Source: Lepidodermella squamata
Taxonomy: Eukaryota; Animalia; Gastrotricha
Reading direction: 5' to 3'
NCBI GenBank assembly: GCA_047495785.1
Contig: JBLDXI010000015.1
Coordinates: 2,542,001 to 2,606,000 of the forward strand
Length of the DNA: 64,000 bases
The notes under the pieces are model-generated. The model worked only from the letters and a program-made list of their open reading frames with translations. It searched no databases and was not told the origin of the DNA. Below, in pieces: positions 2,317-59,329 of this stretch. A program made the position numbers and the translations under genes. How positions within the stretch are numbered: the stretch's first letter is position 1; every line of letters starts with the position of its first letter.

Positions 2317-4620
2317 TCACGCAGGAATGATCATGCCAGTATTTGCTGGGCTGTTCAAGTTCAAGTTGTTGGACGATCGACGCAAGCCGCCTAGAAAATC
2401 AGACGGTCGCAACGCCCGATTTTTATCAGGCACCGGCTTGGCAACAGCTGTAAGTTTCATGCTGATCAGTATCAGGCAAATTGCAGAGAGTAACAAAAGT
2501 CCGATTGAAATGACCAATTCGAGCATAACCGAATCTGACGAAATGAAAGAAATCGCCACAACGCCCATGAACAAAGTGATTGCCACAATGAATAGAAGAA
2601 CTACACGCTTGGCCTCTGAGTTGTATTTGAAATATGGGAGTGACCGTAACTTCAGCGCGAAACCAGCTCCCATCAACAGGACAGCGAAATTACACGCAAT
2701 AAGAGCGGCTAAAAACTCGCCTGAGTAATTGTCCGATTTGCACTCTAGATATTTCGGGGTGATGTACGTGTCTATCTCTTCAAAGTATTTCCGTGAAGCG
2801 AGACTATCGTTCGTGACGGCTTTTAACGGATCGATACAAGTCCAAGCAATGCAGATCGATGAACAAACCAAAGGAAAAATGATGGATAGTTTAACATTGT
2901 ATCGGGTGGTTTTTTCCGCAGTCAAATCTCTTGTTTCCTTGTAAGACTCTCTGAGACACAACACTAAGGTTGCAACTAGATGAGAAACTCCCAACGTTGT
3001 AGCGAAAAGTGAAAAGAGACAGGACGAGTCTGTCTTGCAGGATGTGGGAGTTGCAACCGCTATAGACGCGGCGCAATTCAAGACAATCGATAGTTTGAAG
3101 TAGTAGAGATAAGTCGTGATGTACCTTTTTTCATGGTCGCGAAATTTCGTGATCAGAAACGCAAGAGAACACAACGAAATAAGGACAGCTAGAGCACTTA
3201 TCACCGAAAAGACACCAGGCCTCATTCCTGTGTCGATTTCCGTCTCGAGCGGGCCATCCAGGGGAATTTCAGCTAGGGCCTCCATAACCTTGAAATCATA
3301 ATAGGACGAATTCAAAAGAGTAGATTGACTTTTCCCGTTGAATGTAATCGCATATCGAACAACCAAGCCCCGATCACTGTACCACTGCGAGACAAGTTGC
3401 GGCTCGTTGTCGAATTCCATGCGTTCTGAGTAGCGAAAATCTCCATGCCTCAAATTTCGAATCACCAACGCTCCAGCACTTCTGTTTGCAACAGATGCGA
3501 CCAACTTCGGCTTTTCAAAATAGTTCTTCAAAGTAAGGTTAAGTTTCTTGAGTTCATTCTCAGTGTTATGAAGCGTCATCAGTCCATGAAGAGCGATGTC
3601 GTAGCACAGATGGCGGAAGACATAGTCTGACCGAAAAGTGCCATTAGTTAACGTCTGGTAAATGACTTCAAAATCTGAAATAGAATGGCCTAAAGATGTT
3701 TTCCCGACGGGTGGAATTGGCGCGTCGTAAGGCGGGCCGACGAAGAGCGTTCGTTTCAGCTGATCATAGAACTTCTCCCGGCTACACCACGGAGGGTAGA
3801 ACGAGTCCGGCCACCCGGAAGGTAAGGTGTAAATGTGCGTGCCTGAAATAAACATGTACCTGGGCCCTCTGATGCCAACATTGTAGGCTCGGCAGAGAAA
3901 TAGCGGAACTTGCGCGAAAACTCCGGGGTCGACTATAAAAACGCGAATGCCAGCATTTTTCATCGCCAGCTAAACGTGGTCGTTCGAATCAGTAAGAGCC
4001 TCCATAGAGACAACTTTGATGTCAACCTTTGGAGCAAGTTCCAACACCATGTTTGCCAACTCTTGATTCAACGTGTTACCGTCCATATTTAACACAATTC
4101 CCACCTTTCGCCAACGTGCTATCATTCTTATGAACTGAACTCTTCCATAGATTGCAATTTGGGCCGATGATCGAATTCGGTACATGTTAGGATAAACATC
4201 TCGTCTAGCAGTTTGAGATGGAGCTGTACAACTTAATGCGATCATCACCAAGTCAACTTGGGCAGCTAGACGGCCCCAAGCCACACAGCCTGGGGTGTAC
4301 GTCGTTCCTAGCACTATTGGCGATATTAAGGTAGAATTATCGGTAAACTGGGAGAATTGCATGACATTTCTCACAACTCTAGTTGAAACAGCGCCTTCGT
4401 CCTGAAATACTAGGTCGATATGGTAGTCTGGTAGAATGTCATCCCGATTGTTCACAATATCGACCACCTTACGCTGAGTGGCAGCACAGGATTCGAAGTT
4501 GAGGGGCTCATTACCGGTGAAAGGTAACATCGACAGCATTTTCATTCGGTGGGGTTTTGTTTGGCAACTAACGGCAGCCGCGAACACGACCATGAAGAAA
4601 ATTTGACATTGGTAAGCCAT
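2317..4620 (-). CDS. Class C GPCR, GABA-B-receptor-like (Venus flytrap plus 7TM), intronless, interrupted by one in-frame TAG at 3970-3972 (possible pseudogene or readthrough)
   Basis: ORFs 3970..4620 and 2317..3963 are in the same frame. Signal peptide, VNNRDDILPDYHIDL, YPNMYRI, GIRGPRYMFI, seven hydrophobic helices and the W..IDPL and C.S motifs typical of GABA-B 7TM. Confidence 0.85.
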
Positions 4621-35963: not shown

Positions 35964-38623
35964 ATGAGAATAATTCTGGCTGTTTTAGCAATTGGGCTTG
36001 TTGCTTGCGCCCGAGCTGAGCCAGAAGAAGAGACGCGGTCGGATTTCCGAAAGCTGTCCGACAAAATCGTAGAAAAAATCATCCTCAGCCCGAATGGCGA
36101 GTTGGACATGGAAGCGCTCGAAGATCTAGCCATCCAGCTCATCGAACTCAACGAACGCGCCGCTGTTTTGAAGGGCCGTAGTAAGCAGAAGTCGGCCGTA
36201 GATCACCACGGCGGTCATCAGTCGTACGAAGCTGTCGAGCGGTCGTCGCCGTCGAAATTGGCCCTCAACGACTATTTGACTATCAATAAGCCACCGACGA
36301 GTCTCGGCCCGTTTGTCAGTGCAGGGTGTGATATTTGCGCGTCTGTCGTTGCGATCGGAGGTCGTATTGCGGCAATCGAAGCTGTTTGGCCGCGCATCAT
36401 TGACCTGGCGAAGCGGCTATGCCCACGGATTACTGGCGGTTTTTCTAAGTACTCCTGCGATGGATATGTCGACTCGTTTGACGTAAGTAAACAACCATAC
36501 GTGTTTATAATTAAGTATTCTCGCATTATTATTACACGAGAGCAGTGTGCGCGTGCTTCAGATTATATTACATCAAACACACTGTAATTTTCACATGGGG
36601 ATGTAGCTCAGTGGTAGAGCGCTTGCTTTGCATGTAAGATGTCCCGGGTTCAAACCCCGGCATCTCCAACTTTTTATGTTTTATTTTTTTTATTTTTATT
36701 TTTTATTTCATCCAACTAATTTCTAACTCTTATATTTTTTACGCAGCCTATTGTCAAGTATATTCTGCCGACCGTTATCAAGGCGCCCTACACTGCTTGC
36801 GATATGGTTCTCGGCTTCCTGGGCTGCGGTACCCCAGATCGCAATCATTATCTATGGGAAGTCCCTCTACCCGACCCGCTCGCGGAGGAAGTCCCACAAA
36901 TGACAGTCGATCCCGCGCCGACCAAGGACAAATTAACTGTCCTGCACATGACCGACATCCATATCGACCCTGAGTACAAGCCCGGCAGCCCGGCGCATTG
37001 CTTGGAGCCGATGTGCTGCCGTGAGGCGTCTACTCCTAATATTCCAGAAAGTGAGAAAAATCAACGCATTATATGAATTGAAGTGCTAACTTGCTAATAT
37101 TTTTAAAGATGGAACTTGGTCAGAGTCTGGAAACGCCGGTTATTGGAGCGACTATCGAGCCTGCGATACCCCGACTTGGACTTTTGAAGAATTGCTGCGA
37201 GATGCGAATGAGCAGCATGGAAAAGATGTATAAAATCGAGATTTGCACTACCTTTCAAAAAATTTATTTATTAATTTATTATAGATTGATATGGTCTTCA
37301 TTGCTGGCGATTTGCCGCCGCATGATACCTGGAACCAAACAGCTAAAGTTCACAGTGAAATTATCGATTTCGTCGCTGATGCTCTGGATAAGAAACTACC
37401 CGGAAAACCTGTTTATTTCGCTGTTGGAAATCACGAAGTTGCCCCTGTTAACACGTATAAACAATCGCAAAATATCCGCTGAATTTTTGAAAATTTTAAC
37501 ATTGTTAGGTACACCCTATCTGAGGCCGATGAGGCGGCTTTCCCATCTCAATGGCTTTTCGATAAATTCTCATCTGTTTGGACCAAATGGCTGCCGGATG
37601 GTTTCGATACTACGACCATCAAAAAGTGACAGCATAAAATTTTCCCTGGCATTTATCTTTAATTTTCCAATTTCAGGGCCGGATTTTACACCACCGTCCT
37701 TAAGCCTGGATGGCGATTGATTTCCATGAACGACAACTACTGCTTGTCGCAAAATTTGTGAGTCACTAAATTCGCTGGAACCCGAGAATTTCACGATTTT
37801 TTCTATTTTTTCAGCTTGCTTTTCGGCCCATCTTACGCTCCTGATCCACAGGGCCTTCTCAAATTTCTCGTAGACACCCTAACAGAGGCCGAGAAGAAGG
37901 GCGAACGCGTTCAAATCCTAGGCCACATTCCGCCAGGTGACGACGATTGCCTGCAGACGTGGAGCTGGAACTACTATCGCATCATCAGCCGTTTCGGACA
38001 CATTATCACCGGCCAATTTTTCGGCCACATCCACCGCGATTATTTCACTATGTACTACGACGATGAAACCCTGAATGTGCCAAAGGGCGTCGCTTTCGTC
38101 GGCCCACCTGGCACTACCTTTGCCCGCAACAACATTGCCTATCGTTTGTACGAGTTCGATTCGAAAACTTACGTAAGTTGAAATTATTTTAAGGAGGATT
38201 TATTAATTTTTGTAATTTTTACAGCAAATGTTGGACTACAAAACTTTCTACGCCGATATTGATGCGGAGAACAAGAAGGGTGACAAGACAAAGATGACCT
38301 GGATGCAGGAATATTCCGCGAAGGAGGCCTACGGTCTGCCAGACCTCAGCCCGAAGTCTTGGAGCGATTTCGTGAAGAAAATGCAAAGCGATCGGCCGTT
38401 GTTCAACACTTATCGCAAGCATTTCACCGTTAGCCTGAATGATCAAACCGAGCCATGCGGTATTGAATGCCGACGACTGAGGTTGTGCGAGATTTACCAG
38501 GGCTTCTCGCAGGTTCCGGAAAACTGGTGTGAGCGCTTTTTCCCGCGGGATCCGAAGCCAGCTGATGATCCGTCAATTCGGAAGTGCTCGGCCCGATTCA
38601 TTCGCCGCCCGGACATCGTCTAG
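35964..38623 (+). CDS. SMPD1: Acid sphingomyelinase-like, paralog 2
   Basis: Signal peptide, saposin domain, and DIHID, GDLPPH, GNHE, ILGHIPPG and FFGHIH. Collinear with paralog 1. Confidence 0.93.
36597..36668 (+). tRNA. tRNA-Ala(TGC), inside intron 1 (36483-36746) of SMPD1 paralog 2
   Basis: Cloverleaf with acceptor GGGGATG/CATCTCC containing the G3:U70 pair, anticodon TGC and an oligo-T terminator. Confidence 0.96.
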
Positions 38624-39979: not shown

Positions 39980-41704
39980 ATGGATCATCATCACCACGAT
40001 CACAGCCAGCACGTACCGGCCGCTCCCTTGCCTCAGCCTGCTGATCAAGCCTTGGTTAACGTCCCATATCCAATACAACCGAACCCTTATGTTGTCCCGA
40101 CCGACAATAACGGTGCAACTGTATTTTACTACGGAACTCCGCCTTTAATTAAAAAGACAGGTGGCACAGCTTTTATCGGTCATTTACTTCCCGGGTCTTT
40201 TTTCATCGTGTTTTCATTATGGTGGATCGTCTGCACTTTTCAACGATACAAAAAATGCGTGAAAAATGGACGAACTTTCCGCGCATCAGCCAGTTATCAG
40301 TTGGCGTTGTCGAAAAATCAATCCGGCGACATGCGAGCTCCTTATTTTCTTGTCGATGGGGTCGTTAGACGATTCCTAAATTGTTGCTGTTGCTGTTGCT
40401 GCATTATTTTTACTCGTTTACCTATCGAAGGAGGAGTAAAATTGCTGGCAGCTGTGATAGGGACTCTAGGAGAATTAGCCACTGGTTGGGACTATGGAAT
40501 GCAACGATTCAGGCCTACAGGAACGCAGCACGTTACCATGTACCTGCTTTACGGCGTTTCTGGGCTTTGCGATGTTCTGGTCTATTTTCAAGCCTATTTC
40601 GCTCCTCGGAATCTAGATTACAGTAAGCCTTAATTTTCCATTTTTTTTCTTGCTGCCGCTACGCTGTCCAAATTTTAATCTTAATTTTTTTAAAGCATTC
40701 GCAAATGAGCCCATTTATGTCCCTAAAATTCCCAAATTTTCTCTTTTTTTTAGTATTTTCATACATAAACTCGAAAATGTCCGTAATTTTCTATTTTTAT
40801 TGTTATGGCTGATTTTTGCCATAAAACACCAGGTGTTACCTTTATTTTGATAAGAGCTGATAAAGGAATATTAGAATTCTCCAGAAAACGTGACTGTAAA
40901 ATTGTGTGCACACTTTTCTTGTTGACACATGTTTTATAAATAAGGTTTTGCATTTGTCACGCAGCCCTAGTGGCCTAATGGCAAGGCGTCGGCCTCCTAA
41001 GCCGAAGATTGTGGGTTCGAGTCCCACCTGGGGTGCAATATTTTTTTTTATTTTTATTTTTTATTTTTTATTTAGCCGGTCTAGCATTTGCTGTCGGTGG
41101 CGAGGCGCTCTTACTCTACCTCCACGCGCCTCATGGTGATGGCGGGGGTCATGGAGGTCACGCTATAGTCGAAAATTCCTGCCACCAATTGTTATTCTAC
41201 GCCGTCGCTGCTTGTTTCCTACTGATTTTAATCGAACAGATAATGCCTGAGTCTCTTTTGGTCACCCTGGCAAGGTCTTACGCTCTTCTTCTCCACGGAA
41301 CTTGGTTTGTCGCGGTAAGCTTAAAATTAAAAAAAAAATTAAAATTTTGTAATTAATTTTGCAATTTTTAGACTGGCTGTATTTTGGCACCGCCATGGGC
41401 TAGCCAACCCGAATGGGATCTGAACAATATGGAAAATGTCATGTACATAGTCGCGATTTTCTGCTGGGTCAGCATGGGTTTATTCGTTTTTATCCTCGTA
41501 ATTGGCGCCGTTATTCTAAGACCCGTCCGTGAACAGCTGCATCTGAATCATTTCAAATCTCAAAATTCTGAAAATGGAAGCGTTCATTCGAATGGGAAAG
41601 TCGGTAACGGGGGTTATGCGTACAAGAACTTACCATTAAATAACAGCAATGATCACTCTGGCAGCTCTCAAAGCTTACTAACGATTCATACAGATTCCAA
41701 TTAA
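39980..41704 (+). CDS. TMEM45: Transmembrane protein 45 (DUF716 family)
   Basis: Motifs GHLLPGSFFIVFSLWW, QHVTMY, HQLL and GTWF. Introns 40623-41075 and ~41315-41371. Confidence 0.9.
40964..41035 (+). tRNA. tRNA-Arg(CCT), inside the TMEM45 intron
   Basis: Cloverleaf with acceptor GCCCTAG/CTGGGGT, anticodon arm TCGGC-CT CCT AA-GCCGA and T-loop TTCGAGT. Confidence 0.96.
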
Positions 41705-55501: not shown

Positions 55502-55857
55502 ATGAGACAAAACTCGACTTTAATTCGTGTGATTTGTTAATTGTACTACGACGATTCATGAGTAAAGATTTTTCTGACTCGGCACGGACGTACTCTGATG
55601 TGTCCTGTTAAATTGTTGATGGCACGCAGGAAATGAGCATTCGAGCGCGATGAGCTGTTCCTGTAGGAACGCCGCACAATCCCTATAATAATGCGTAATA
55701 TCGCATCTTCTCACACTATTGCAATATGACCCACAGCCAAGTGGGCGTCGCATCTTTTAGCTCTCTGAGTTCAAGCTAAATCCCACGGTGACGATAATTC
55801 AAATATTACTTGATTTATCGCGCAAACTATCGCTTATTTCAGTCAAAACGCTTGCGT

Positions 55858-56293
55858 ATGATGAGACGATTTTTACACATTTTTTTATTGGGTGCAGCGG
55901 GTCTTGCGTTTTTATCTATGCAAGTTGAGGGAAGCCTAGGGCGATATCATGATAGGTCTTACTTGGACCCGAATCGCTCAACCTCCACTGCTACCCCAGA
56001 ATTCACAACGACTGCACCAATAACGATCTCGCAAGCAGACACAGCCGCGAGGATGAATGAAATCAGTATTTTTTCCATTTTTTTCTTTTAAAAATATTCA
56101 ATATATCGATCCAACAGAGCAGCTATTTGACACAATTGTGCGAAGAGGTGATGTAAACGAGATGGAGAAACTTGTCGCAACAATTATGGCATCAAAGAAA
56201 TTCCGCAAAACAGCGGCTTGTCTCGACCAATTCGGCGGAAAATCAGCTCGGGCAATTCCGATAATCTCAGTTTTATGCGTCAAATCTTCCTAA
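55858..56293 (+). CDS. Small secreted peptide precursor with C-terminal Cys ring (family member A)
   Basis: Signal peptide and phase-1 intron 56066-56117. Ends KKFRKTAACLDQFGGKSARAIPIISVLCVKSS*. A paralog lies at 62406. Confidence 0.8.
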
Positions 56294-56396
56294 AAAATTG
56301 CGAAGTTATCAGAAAAAAATGTCAACATTTATTTGATAATTTTCGTCAAGATGAAAGCTCCACTCAGTAGAACAGTAAAATTTGTCAGTTTCTTCT

Positions 56397-59329
56397 TCAA
56401 TAGCGGTCTGATTTCATGATGTTTGTGTTGTACCAGTCAAAGACACACGAATTTGCGCTTGAAAACTGAGCCATCAATCGATAGGTTGGTTTCATAGCGT
56501 AAATCGAAGCTGTCTCACCGAAACCGCCATTAGTAATCACAAGCCAATCCATTTGAGTCAAAACGACCCAATCAAACACTTCCAGCGCTGCTTTTCTCCA
56601 GTTATCATCCGAGTAATTAGGCGAATCTTCCAAGGCTCCAGTTGTAGCAATCACTTGTACGTTGTTTAAGCCATTCAGTCCAGTTCGAAGTGAGGCTATG
56701 ACCCGATTATATTGGTCGTTGTCTTCCTGATTACTTAAATCAGTAGTCACAACCACGAAAATTGACTTGGTGACAGATTCTTTTTTGGCCCGAATTTTCT
56801 CCAAAATAATGTCTTTAACCTTGCCGGAGAAGCATTTCCAGACTTCATCAGTCAAAACAGGGCATTGGCTCGATTTTGAGGATTGGCAAGTTTTGACCTG
56901 GACCCCAATTTTGATCGACTCATCACTGATTTTTTGGTCAGATTTCCATTTTCCCACAATTTCCCTGAATTGAGTTTGAAGATTGCCGAAAATAACTCGC
57001 ATTGCAGCACTGAGGTATATGGCGTGATTCACGTTGCTTTTGTACTCTGGCAGGGTAGAAATAGCTGAATGAAGATACGTGTGGAAATAGGTCACTCGGA
57101 AAATTGGCTCCAGCACAAATTTGCCCAGACTTGATGTGATAACCAGCACATCAGCTTTTTGCCTCAGCTCCATAATTCGCCATTGATTCAGCATGCTAAT
57201 AACTGGGTAGTTGTTCGTGAGATCGGCTTGAACGTAAAGAGGCCTGTATGATGACTGCATTAGATCGGCTTCGTACTGTTTCGCAGTAATGTTGTACCAA
57301 TTTTCGTTTGATAGGAAGAAATTTGCTGTCATGTCAGCTGGGTCTGTCCATTGCATGCCGAAAATACGATCAGAGACTATCGCCAGGTATAATAGGGTAG
57401 CAGCTCCCCGAATTCGATCACCAAAACCGCCGCATAGCTCATCAGGCCCACACCGGTAAATCAGAAACTGAAAAACAAAGAAATAACATTAAGGGACAGA
57501 TGACTAGTTTTTGGTTTTTATGAAGCAAAAACAGGGTTCCGAAAACATTTCAATTTTTCGGCATGAAAATGAGAATATTCCCAACTTAAAAATGGTTATA
57601 GGTGAAATATGCAAGGTCCATAAAATCGAACATTTGAAAACCCGGAAATTTGACTCAACCTTAAGGCCGATTCCTTACCGAGCCCTAACCCTAACCCTAA
57701 ACTTAACCCCGAATCCTAACCGAGCCCCACCCTTACCGCAATGCCAAACCTAACCCTAACTCTAACCCTAATCCTAGCCAGAACTTAGAACCCTAACCGA
57801 GCCTTAACCTTAACCCTAACCCGAACCCGAGCCCCTAACCCTATCTTCTCATCATCGAGCTGAAAACACAATTTTATGACAGAAATATGTATGAAAGATT
57901 AGTATTATGTCTATTGAATCACTTCGTAAAAAACACAGATGAAAAAATGAATGAAAAAAAATTAAAAAATCCTCCTTAAAATGTCAATTTTTAGTGAAAT
58001 CACCCAGGAAGACTAAGTTGCATGTAATCCTTGAAACTTTTTCAAAAAGCCTACCTGTAGACGGTAAGAATGAGGCCGTTTGATGATATCAGCTCGTTTT
58101 TTCATGTACTTCATCCGCATTTCCATCGCAATTTTCTCAACCATTTTCTCGCGGTACCGCAACGCCCTCTCATCCGCTGTTTCCTTCGCCCACACAGGCC
58201 CCTCTTGTATCCGATCATCGAACTGTATTTTTATAGGGTAATACGGCAGATCTGGTATGCTCTGGGCGAAGCAGTAATTCGGGTTGATGAACTTGGTCGG
58301 ATGCTTCACCTTGGCGTAGTAATAATTGAGTAATTGATGAAACTCCGGCTGTTCGAGGTCAGGGTCGTCATTTCTCGATTTAGGCGTATAGAAGCAATCA
58401 CTCAAAACCTGGCACATTTTCGCGATTTCAGCTGTCTCACCTGCGAAATACTGAGTGGCATAGTAGAACCTTTCCTCCTCAGATTTCACCGCGACATAAG
58501 CACAGCTATCTTTCCGCCGGTCGTAGGGAAACAGCGTATTTTCGCGAAACGTGTAATAAGCCGGGTGTAACACGGCGACAAATGGCCCGAGCAGCTCGTC
58601 GATAACGTTAGTTTGCTGTAGCACAGACATGCGGCCGTCGAACGACATGACGTAATCAAAGTGCGCCGGGTCAAAGTAATTAAAGCGGCGCGCGTAGTGC
58701 GCGTAAATACGGCACGGATTAGCCGCGTAACGCGCACGCTCTTTCGCGCTCACGTCCACCCTAACAAAACTGCCGTTTTTCGAGTCCTCCAGCAGTGATG
58801 ACGTCACTGCGGTATCGGTAAACAGGAAGTAAGTTGGCTCGAACGTGTCCGACGAGTGATTAACAGCGGATTTCCAGCGGAATTGAACGCGCGCCGACTC
58901 CCAGAACTGAATTCCTCTGCCCGCGCCGTTGTCAATGACTAAAATTGCGATTTTCCGCGTTTTACCTCTCACGCCTTTCGTAGTTGGCGCTTCGAGTAAA
59001 ATATGCTCCACTTTCTCCACTTTCTTCGTAGTTTGCGGGAGGGTGATCAGTTGCTGTTTAATCAATTTCGCGCCAGTTTCGTCGTTGGAAATCACAAGTG
59101 GGACATTGATTGATTTCAGCGTTGTAGTAATAGCTTCATCTGCCGATGTAATGAGGTCAAACGCCGGATATTCGTGATGAATTTGCCCATCAGTGGCGGG
59201 TTTGAGTTCTGCGGATCCTGATGGCGTAAGCCATAGTGAAATTAAGGCGAATAACAGCAGGCCTATCGAGATGATTGCGAGCCACCAGCGCCTCCTTAAT
59301 CGATGGAAACAATAACGAAGGGCGCGCAT
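56397..59329 (-). CDS. Type II membrane fusion protein: GT6 (ABO-like) domain plus GT-B fucosyltransferase-like domain
   Basis: Exon 59329-58055 carries the TM anchor, TYFLFTD and VAVLHPAYY..FPYDRR..AYV..FYY. It joins in phase 0 via intron 58054-57468 to exon 57467-56397 (CGGFGDRIRG, IGVQV, FVVVTTD, DWVVL..GGFG). Confidence 0.82.
57683..57843 (+). repeat. Degenerate (CCCTAA)n telomere-like tract, intronic
   Basis: CCCTAACCCTAACCCTAA plus variants (CCTTAA, CCCGAA, CTCTAA) over ~160 nt. Confidence 0.75.

Follow-up and report, generated by a model that had tools for sequence, protein, structure and literature searches.

Glycosyltransferase families contain non-catalytic paralogues, among them Cosmc, a GT31-like chaperone, and GAUT7, the anchor of GAUT1. 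In active GT6 enzymes, a DXD motif (metal-dependent) or an NXN motif (metal-independent) lies where the subdomains meet, and the catalytic Glu is that of the W-H-D-E motif (E303 in GTA/GTB, E317 in α3GalT and E192 in BoGT6a). The bacterial enzymes of the NXN type function without DXD or metal (PMC3961637). Fucosyltransferases have conserved GDP-binding residues, and loss of R365 abolishes the activity of FUT8 (bioRxiv 10.1101/2020.02.14.949818); an Arg, a Ser and an Asp are important in these enzymes (bioRxiv 10.1101/2020.02.14.949818, PMC7014118, PMC12717137). In PgtA, two successive steps are carried out by one bifunctional β1,3-galactosyltransferase/α1,2-fucosyltransferase (PMC8439653).

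Here we describe a gene on the minus strand of a 64,000-nucleotide stretch of DNA (the window), in which a GT6-type and a GT37-type domain are predicted to share one membrane protein. Both domains come from well-studied enzyme families; our search of the literature found no paper on GT6-type and GT37-type domains united in this way.

Gene structure

The gene consists of two exons separated by a single intron, with the following features:

58055–59329, minus strand: exon 1, open for 425 codons, starting with the ATG at 59329
59225–59287, minus strand: type II signal anchor, residues ~15–35 (WLAIISIGLLLFALISLWL), with RLRRR just before it
57468–58054, minus strand: intron, GT..AG, phase 0, 587 nt, GC 0.37
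57683–57843, minus strand: degenerate (TTAGGG)n array of ~27 units within the intron
56397–57467, minus strand: exon 2, 356 codons plus stop (56399–56397), GT37-like GT-B fucosyltransferase-like domain
56328–56333, minus strand: AATAAA, likely poly(A) signal for the whole gene, 64 nt past the exon-2 stop

The predicted product, of ~781 residues, is a single type II membrane protein of the Golgi type. Exon 1 would supply a short, cytosolic Arg-rich tail, the anchor and a stem, then the GT6-like domain (GT-A type) with a helical linker after it, followed by the GT37-like GT-B domain from exon 2, the two halves being joined at the domain boundary by cis-splicing of the phase-0 intron. The intron opens with the donor G58054-T58053 and closes with the acceptor A57469-G57468 (ttttcag). 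Unspliced read-through from exon 1 would reach a TAG at 58015–58013, 13 codons past the donor, and a TAA shuts the exon-2 frame immediately upstream of the acceptor. With the base composition of the window, open frames of these lengths would be expected by chance with probabilities of 2e-10 and 3e-12. The strongest 19-residue Kyte–Doolittle window in exon 1 scored 2.49, at residue 17, while exon 2 contains no comparable segment (maximum 1.4). The first in-frame ATG of exon 2, at 57356, lies 37 codons in, downstream of the GGFGDR motif at residues 13–18. The sequence-only reading of this DNA had joined the two exons by a phase-0 GT-AG intron and had found the second to be without a start codon or anchor of its own ahead of GGFGDR. 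Both observations held: the frames are open, the splice sites are canonical, and neither an in-frame ATG nor a hydrophobic segment precedes the motif. Removal of 58054–57468 in this animal is thus the predicted event.

No ORF with an ATG and a hydrophobic anchor was found in the intron, nor did a scan of it reveal hidden exons, start codons, anchors or copies elsewhere in the window. A canonical poly(A) signal is likewise absent from the intron, including the stretch from 58013 to 57468; AATAAA occurs only after exon 2. The intron is long for its surroundings, where neighbouring ORF pieces in the genome are often <100 nt apart. The difference in GC3 between the exons (0.57 versus 0.46) was considered as a sign of two genes and dropped, since both values fall within the range of the other long ORFs in the window. 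Searches were run exon by exon, and tblastn with both exons found no paralogue elsewhere in the window.

The GT6-like and fucosyltransferase-like domains

The relevant features of the exon-1 domain are:

58220–58954, minus strand: GT6-like (GT-A type) domain, residues ~126–370, from Pfam, NCBIfam and ABO/α3GalT chain matches
58631–58639, minus strand: D231-G232-R233, where pairwise and family alignments put the metal-binding DXD of GT6
58331–58345, minus strand: E329-F-H-Q-L333, aligned to the GT6 catalytic segment W-H-D-E-S-H, motif not intact

Exon 1 matched Pfam PF03414 (GT6) over residues 223–360 with an E-value of 1.4e-15 and a score of 57.4 bits (cut-off 25). The NCBIfam model Gltr_6 aligned residues 126–358 with its positions 2–213 of 226, at a score far under its 250-bit cut-off, and ABO and α3GalT chains matched at 1e-10 to 1e-8. 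The atlas clusters nearest to the domain were PF03414 in every case. In the pairwise alignment, D231-G232-R233 falls on D211-V-D213 of the human ABO transferase; exon 1 has neither DXD nor NXN at this place, but D-G-R. Family alignments show DGR, DSF, DNR, DSN and DGD in the relatives. The catalytic segment is more ambiguous. The pairwise phmmer alignment places E329 on E303 and a His on H233, with the equivalents of W300, H301 and D302 lost, whereas the family profile and the pairwise alignment with one fused relative (P0006) put F-H-Q on W300-H301-D302, so that L333 comes to lie at E303. Whichever alignment is used, there is no intact four-residue W-H-D-E in exon 1. This copy is nonetheless the best-preserved GT6 domain in the family, with a Pfam E-value of 1e-15 versus 2e-3 or no match in the relatives.

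Exon 2 alone yielded no match to Pfam (E up to 1), NCBIfam or PDB sequences. It falls short of Pfam PF03254 (XG_FTase), for which a set of 20 relatives produced one sub-threshold match; the Pfam scan of these 20 gave two weak matches only. A search with exon 2 found 110 relatives, and a family profile of 77 sequences matched AtFUT4 (9NQH) at 6e-17 and AtFUT1 (5KOE) at 1e-16 over profile positions 13–305, followed by FUT8 at 6e-10 and NodZ at 2e-9. The AlphaFold model of exon 2 had a pLDDT of 86 and a pTM of 0.89 (pLDDT only 35 when predicted from the single sequence). Foldseek matched the model to AtFUT1 at 3e-12, and VIA gave Z-scores of 22.2 for AtFUT1 over 288 residues, 19.9 for FUT8, 18.3 for NodZ and 15.8 for POFUT1; the next fold after the fucosyltransferases scored 10.6. 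At the level of profile and predicted fold, exon 2 thus belongs to the GT-B fucosyltransferase superfamily (GT11/23/37/65/68/74), with GT37 as the best match.

The domain assignments of the sequence-only reading therefore stand on different footings: that of exon 1 as GT6-like agrees with a Pfam score above the gathering cut-off, whereas that of exon 2 as fucosyltransferase-like was borne out by profile and fold, the Pfam search with exon 2 being empty.

Several positions in the exon-2 domain could be compared with the characterized enzymes:

57414–57431, minus strand: G13-G-F-G-D-R18, N-terminal family motif (GLGNR in AtFUT1), retained
56892–56894, minus strand: K192, Arg in 74 of 77 relatives, equivalent to the Arg of AtFUT1 IGIQVR and to FUT8 R365
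56625–56627, minus strand: D281, His in 75 of 77 relatives
56526–56528, minus strand: G314, Ser in 72 of 77 relatives (motif III), aligned with the FUT8 S468/S469 pair

The family motif ISRSGFGETA has become ITNGGFGETA in this copy, and P283 replaces an Asp found in 60 of the 77 relatives. The FUT8 GDP-binding quartet H363, R365, D453 and S469 corresponds to Q190, K192, D299 and G314, of which only the Asp and the AtFUT1-like Gln are kept. Most fold-core residues and several motif residues (GGFGDR, D243, D299 and GFGETA) are retained. An engineered AtFUT1 with the identical Arg-to-Lys change (PDB 5KX6) still binds GDP, according to the title of the entry. Since Lys is able to pair with phosphate and this mutant binds GDP, some residual or altered activity may persist in the exon-2 domain.

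Relatives and the fusion

Two relatives of 758 and 727 residues (P0006 and P0096) match exon 1 in their N-terminal half and exon 2 in their C-terminal half, and both are uninterrupted ORFs on an animal contig. Four others (P0008, P0015, P0001 and P0010) match the GT6-like profile in their N-terminal domains as well, and a clade of 20 sequences with 95% support contains six of the seven fusions. A further locus (L004) has a 52-nt GT..AG phase-0 intron five residues ahead of a conserved Cys, matching the position and phase of the intron in the window, and its two exons correspond colinearly to P0004, a protein encoded in a single ORF. Colinear single-ORF relatives and an intron of equal position and phase in a relative make it a well-supported prediction that a GT6-type and a GT-B fucosyltransferase-type domain are fused in a single chain, with one Golgi-type anchor ahead of both. 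Most likely, the gene belongs to a lineage-specific GT6-like/GT37-like fusion family of small invertebrates.

We found no close orthologue, the best relatives having 28–34% identity. Word-indexed protein searches with each exon returned no match, a result of little weight because the fused relatives lie outside the length window of these searches. No relatives were detected in metagenome contigs with exon 2 as the query or in genome contigs with exon 1, and a phmmer search of the PDB with the N-terminal domain of P0096 found no match.

None of the family members examined has both the GT6 and the fucosyltransferase signatures. The fucosyltransferase half is intact in some copies; in others, including this one, both signatures are eroded. 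In the family alignment, three proteins have Glu in the column of E329, and these are exactly the three that lack the fucosyltransferase Arg. We considered a reciprocal decay, in which the Glu is kept where the Arg is lost, and softened this proposal since the profile alignments show the equivalence of the Glu to be alignment-dependent.

Proposed function and comparison with known systems

We consider it most probable, at roughly 58%, that the gene encodes a paralogue within the fusion family that is catalytically impaired or has been repurposed, made as one spliced type II protein. The donor-site signatures are worn away in both halves of this copy: in the fucosyltransferase half, the Arg that contacts the GDP β-phosphate has become Lys, the motif-III Ser Gly and a near-invariant His Asp, and in the GT6 half D-G-R stands in place of DXD and W-H-D-E is broken. 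Such a protein would probably serve active members of the family as a scaffold, or as a partner that binds sugar nucleotides or glycans. Unlike the substitutions themselves, its inactivity and its service as partner or scaffold are inferred.

A different possibility is that activity survives in one half: the GT6-like domain would act without metal, R233 taking its place and E329 serving as catalytic Glu, and the fucosyltransferase fold would only bind a GDP-sugar or a glycan. This would fit the superior preservation of the GT6 domain, the E and H retained at E303 and H233 in the pairwise alignment, the coincidence of the Glu column with loss of the fucosyltransferase Arg and the metal independence of the NXN-type enzymes (PMC3961637). 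However, the profile alignments shift the segment and leave Leu at E303, the equivalents of W300, H301 and D302 are missing even in the pairwise alignment, and no position could be assigned to the conserved C-terminal Lys of GT6; we regard this arrangement as unlikely.

Somewhat more doubtful is a bifunctional Golgi enzyme, in which Fuc-α1,2-Gal made by the GT37-like half would next receive α1,3-Gal or GalNAc from the GT6 half. AtFUT1, the closest solved relative, is an α1,2-fucosyltransferase acting on Gal, ABO and BoGT6a use 2'-fucosylated Gal (PMC3961637), the fusion is real, and fused two-step enzymes such as PgtA are known. Against this, K192, D281 and G314 replace residues conserved in 72–75 of the 77 relatives, the replaced Arg is the one that FUT8 cannot lose without becoming inactive, the GT6 half lacks both DXD, which is D-G-R there, and an intact W-H-D-E, and no family member examined retains both signatures. 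With the signatures eroded in both halves, the two successive blood-group-like steps are most likely not carried out. Of the sequence-only proposal that consecutive pathway steps are fused in one Golgi protein, the fusion is thus upheld by the relatives, whereas the two steps find no support in this copy, given the residues lost. Among GT6 enzymes, moreover, a fucosylated acceptor is required by some only (ABO, BoGT6a). An improbable variant would have single-chain synthases of "H then A/B-like" glycans exist as a family in small invertebrates, with this copy working, Lys taking over the role of the Arg, and Arg in place of the second Asp of DXD giving metal independence by a non-NXN route.

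It is still less probable that the gene is a functionless paralogue decaying into a pseudogene. The signature residues are gone from both halves, the long intron contains a repeat and no close orthologue was found, but both frames are fully open, which would be very unlikely by chance, the splice sites are canonical, the fold-core residues are kept in a confidently predicted model and the GC3 of both exons is unremarkable for the window. That both frames are intact argues for selection on some function. Least likely of all are two genes, the first stopping at the TAG at 58013 and the second, downstream in an operon, using the acceptor at 57468 as a spliced-leader trans-splice site, as the long gap and the stop 13 codons past the donor might suggest: no canonical poly(A) signal lies between these positions, starting at the first ATG after the acceptor would remove the nearly invariant GGFGDR strand and leave a protein without an anchor, one relative has a cis-intron at equal position and phase, and others are single ORFs.

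The preferred reading, an impaired or repurposed fusion protein, gives the locus by itself moderate value, as a probably inactive family member. The family, with its intact and eroded copies, amounts to a set of natural experiments and is for that reason tractable for studying the origin and role of glycosyltransferase pseudoenzymes.

The closest solved relatives of exon 2 are Arabidopsis FUT1 and FUT4 (GT37; 5KOE, 5KOP and 9NQH), xyloglucan and arabinogalactan α1,2-fucosyltransferases that are type II Golgi proteins. The exon-2 family shares with them the motifs GLGNR/GGFGDR, IG.Q.R and S..FG, whereas exon 2 itself has only ~16% identity, with the motif Arg changed to Lys and the motif Ser to Gly; the plant enzymes also lack a GT-A domain, which the window protein has. 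FUT8 and NodZ (GT23), POFUT1 (GT65) and POFUT2 (GT68) have the same GT-B-like fucosyltransferase fold, but are further from exon 2 than GT37 and carry other accessory domains (a coiled coil and SH3 in FUT8).

In its GT6-like half, the protein resembles ABO GTA/GTB, α3GalT and BoGT6a in the C-terminal subdomain, which aligns (ABO at 1e-10) including LHP (H233) and the FYY..FFGG region. It differs from them in D-G-R for DXD/NXN, the broken W-H-D-E, a long stem and the partner fused C-terminally. Its host is a protostome-grade invertebrate, which runs counter to a statement of 2014 that invertebrates had yielded no GT6 (PMC3961637). As in Cosmc and GAUT7, a glycosyltransferase fold is kept while catalytic residues are lost, and the partner role suggested for the window protein would be a functional analogy only. 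An architectural parallel is PgtA of Dictyostelium and Toxoplasma, which also joins a GT-A-type domain to one of the α2/α6/O-FucT superfamily in a single polypeptide (PMC8439653). PgtA is a cytoplasmic protein made of a GT2 and a GT74 half, both of them active, whereas the protein described here is predicted to be membrane-anchored and combines GT6-like and GT37-like domains with eroded signatures.

Gene structure and evidence for a single fusion gene

Features of the fusion gene, of the rest of the window and of a relative's scaffold
59329–58055, minus strand: exon 1, with an ATG at 59329 and 425 open codons
58054–58053, minus strand: donor GT, directly after the exon 1 frame
57683–57843, sense strand of the gene: degenerate telomere-like (TTAGGG)n array of ~27 units, inside the intron
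Ending at 57468, minus strand: acceptor ttttcAG, directly before the exon 2 frame
From 57467, stop at 56399–56397, minus strand: exon 2, with 356 open codons
33025–33098, plus strand: tRNA gene, above the Rfam gathering threshold
36597–36668, plus strand: tRNA gene, above the Rfam gathering threshold
40964–41035, plus strand: tRNA gene, above the Rfam gathering threshold
L001:3598–5781 and L001:6001–8277, in tandem: two ORFs (727 and 758 aa), each a GT6-like/fucosyltransferase-like fusion

The two exons join in phase 0. Reading through the donor adds 13 codons before a TAG at 58015–58013, and a TAA immediately upstream of the acceptor closes the exon 2 frame, in which the first ATG (57356) lies downstream of the GGFGDR motif. 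The small ORFs of the intron were checked for a start codon and a hydrophobic segment, and none had both. The sole strong hydrophobic segment of the whole gene model, at exon 1 residues 15–35, is preceded by an Arg-rich tail and is a type II signal anchor. The chance of frames of this length staying open is 2e-10 and 3e-12. Given these open frames, splice sites, phase and single anchor, the sequence-only reading had described the gene accurately to the base, including the intronic stop at 58013 and the lack of a start codon or anchor ahead of GGFGDR. The intron is long relative to the compact genome; the (TTAGGG)n array, the only one of its kind in the window, makes up more than a quarter of it. 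Small ORFs flank the fusion gene at 55810–56293.

Comparison with relatives makes a strong case that the two predicted exons form one gene, and the most telling evidence is an intron on L004, a relative's contig. There, a fusion gene spans 2377–4525, and a 52-nt GTATGT..TTCAG intron (3379–3430) in phase 0 connects the N-domain ORF, which bears the anchor, with the fucosyltransferase ORF. The downstream exon starts Y-L-A-Y-T-C on L004 and F-L-I-Y-R-C in the window, so the intron has the same position and phase in both, five residues ahead of a conserved Cys. The single-ORF protein P0004 is colinear with the two exons of L004. What the public protein collection lists as "stand-alone" fucosyltransferase-like proteins of 355 aa are exon fragments of fusion genes, called by a prokaryotic gene finder that was run on eukaryotic contigs; one of them, P0002 (355 residues), comes from the L004 gene.

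In the relative P0006 (758 aa), residues 26–420 match exon 1 and residues 435–753 match exon 2, and P0096 (727 aa) is likewise matched by exon 1 in its N-terminal and exon 2 in its C-terminal part. Both are uninterrupted single ORFs in tandem on L001, an ENA metagenome scaffold of an animal, in the company of animal genes including NPC1, CATIP and DUF229, showing that the family is tandemly amplified in another organism too. The GT6-like-domain profile also matches the N-terminal halves of P0008, P0015, P0001 and P0010. On the tree of the fucosyltransferase-like domain, a clade of 20 (support 95%) holds six of the seven recognised fusions, with the window's sequence as sister of P0006. The single-ORF relatives and the L004 intron thus bear out the single-chain fusion as a prediction from sequence. 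An operon of two genes, the second trans-spliced, is highly improbable: it would yield an anchorless protein without the nearly invariant first strand and GGFGDR motif, and the intron has no canonical AATAAA, the only one lying 64 nt past the exon 2 stop.

Identity of the two domains

The two exons were analysed separately. Exon 1 passed the Pfam GT6 model (PF03414) at 57 bits (cut-off 25, E 1.4e-15), in agreement with its earlier assignment as GT6-like. E-values of its alignments to ABO and alpha3GalT chains ranged from 1e-10 to 1e-8, and the NCBIfam bacterial GT6 model spans its residues 126–358.

Exon 2 alone had no match in Pfam, NCBIfam or the PDB sequences. An exhaustive HMMER search with it found 110 relatives, with a top identity of only 28–36%; no close orthologue of the gene was found. 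An alignment of 77 sequences of the domain (A1) supplied both the family profile and the AlphaFold input. The A1 profile matched GT37 best (AtFUT4, 6e-17; AtFUT1, 1e-16), covering nearly the whole domain, followed by GT23-type FUT8 (6e-10) and NodZ (2e-9). The AlphaFold model (pLDDT 86, pTM 0.89) had AtFUT1 as its top Foldseek match (3e-12), and VIA-align gave a Z of 22.2 over 288 residues for AtFUT1, 19.9 for FUT8, 18.3 for NodZ and 15.8 for POFUT1, the next unrelated fold scoring 10.6. Exon 2 is therefore GT-B fucosyltransferase-like, as had been proposed, with GT37 as the nearest named family. When the exon 2 model (m5dd9e78d1829) was compared with the ESM Atlas, unnamed clusters in molluscs (323 and 67 members), cnidarians and diatoms had a GT37/GT23-like fold (TM 0.67–0.72), so an unannotated fucosyltransferase-like family seems to be widespread among invertebrates.

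Catalytic residues

A1 has eleven columns with a conservation of 90% or more. Among these, the window copy keeps G13, G14, G16, D17, R18, G21, D243 and A320 and departs at three: position 192 is Lys (Arg in 74 of 77 relatives), 281 is Asp (His in 75 of 77) and 314 is Gly (Ser in 72 of 77). Other changes are D283 to Pro, R313 to Asn and S312 to Thr, and the local alignment has no gaps around any of the substituted positions. In profile alignments, R192 corresponds to the IGIQVR Arg of AtFUT1 and to R365 of FUT8, the retained D299 to FUT8 D453, and S314 falls on the S468/S469 pair of FUT8. [quoted passage not shown] PMC7014118 and PMC12717137 concur on what R365 does. The same Arg-to-Lys change is present in PDB 5KX6, an engineered AtFUT1 mutant crystallised with GDP, whose sequence departs from wild type exactly there. 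This mutant and FUT8 R365K are reportedly nearly inactive.

The GT6-like half has D-G-R in place of the metal-binding DXD, and its segment Q-P-E-F-H-Q-L aligns with the catalytic W-H-D-E-S-H of GT6; the GT6 signature is broken under every alignment. The missing DXD by itself is not disqualifying, because bacterial GT6 enzymes of the NXN type need no metal for their activity (PMC3961637). With that precedent, the GT6-like half might still be active and metal-independent, the fucosyltransferase fold serving as a binding module. Pairwise alignment, which places E329 on E303 while W300, H301 and D302 are lost, would allow this; in the family profile and the pairwise alignment with P0006, F-H-Q falls on W-H-D and E303 faces a Leu. 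Overall, we consider such activity unlikely.

Besides the window copy, only P0006 (Gly) and P0096 (Lys) among the 77 lack Arg 192. In A1 and in A2, the family alignment used for the GT6-like domain, with P0006, P0096, P0008, P0015, P0001 and P0010 as the relatives compared, these three proteins are also alone in having Glu where one of the alignments places the catalytic Glu of GT6. In copies with an intact fucosyltransferase half, this column holds Ser, Lys, Asp, Arg or Ile. The two halves may have decayed reciprocally across the family, the equivalence of the column being alignment-dependent.

Predicted function and known systems

The sequence-only reading had proposed a two-step, histo-blood-group-like Golgi enzyme. 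For the window copy, K192, D281 and G314 in one half and D-G-R with a broken W-H-D-E in the other argue against this, and a fully bifunctional enzyme appears quite unlikely, with Lys in place of the near-invariant Arg. A gene in decay is very unlikely. Most probably (about 0.6), the protein is a real single-chain fusion with both catalytic sites impaired, which would be a paralogue of the active family members with a binding, scaffolding or regulatory role, rather than a two-step synthase.

A literature search on GT6 with GT37, fusions, invertebrates, rotifers, gastrotrichs and tardigrades found no account of a GT6-like/GT37-like architecture, and in 2014 GT6 genes were stated not to have been found in invertebrates (PMC3961637). 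In function, the closest precedent is PgtA, a bifunctional galactosyl/fucosyltransferase that is cytoplasmic (PMC8439653).
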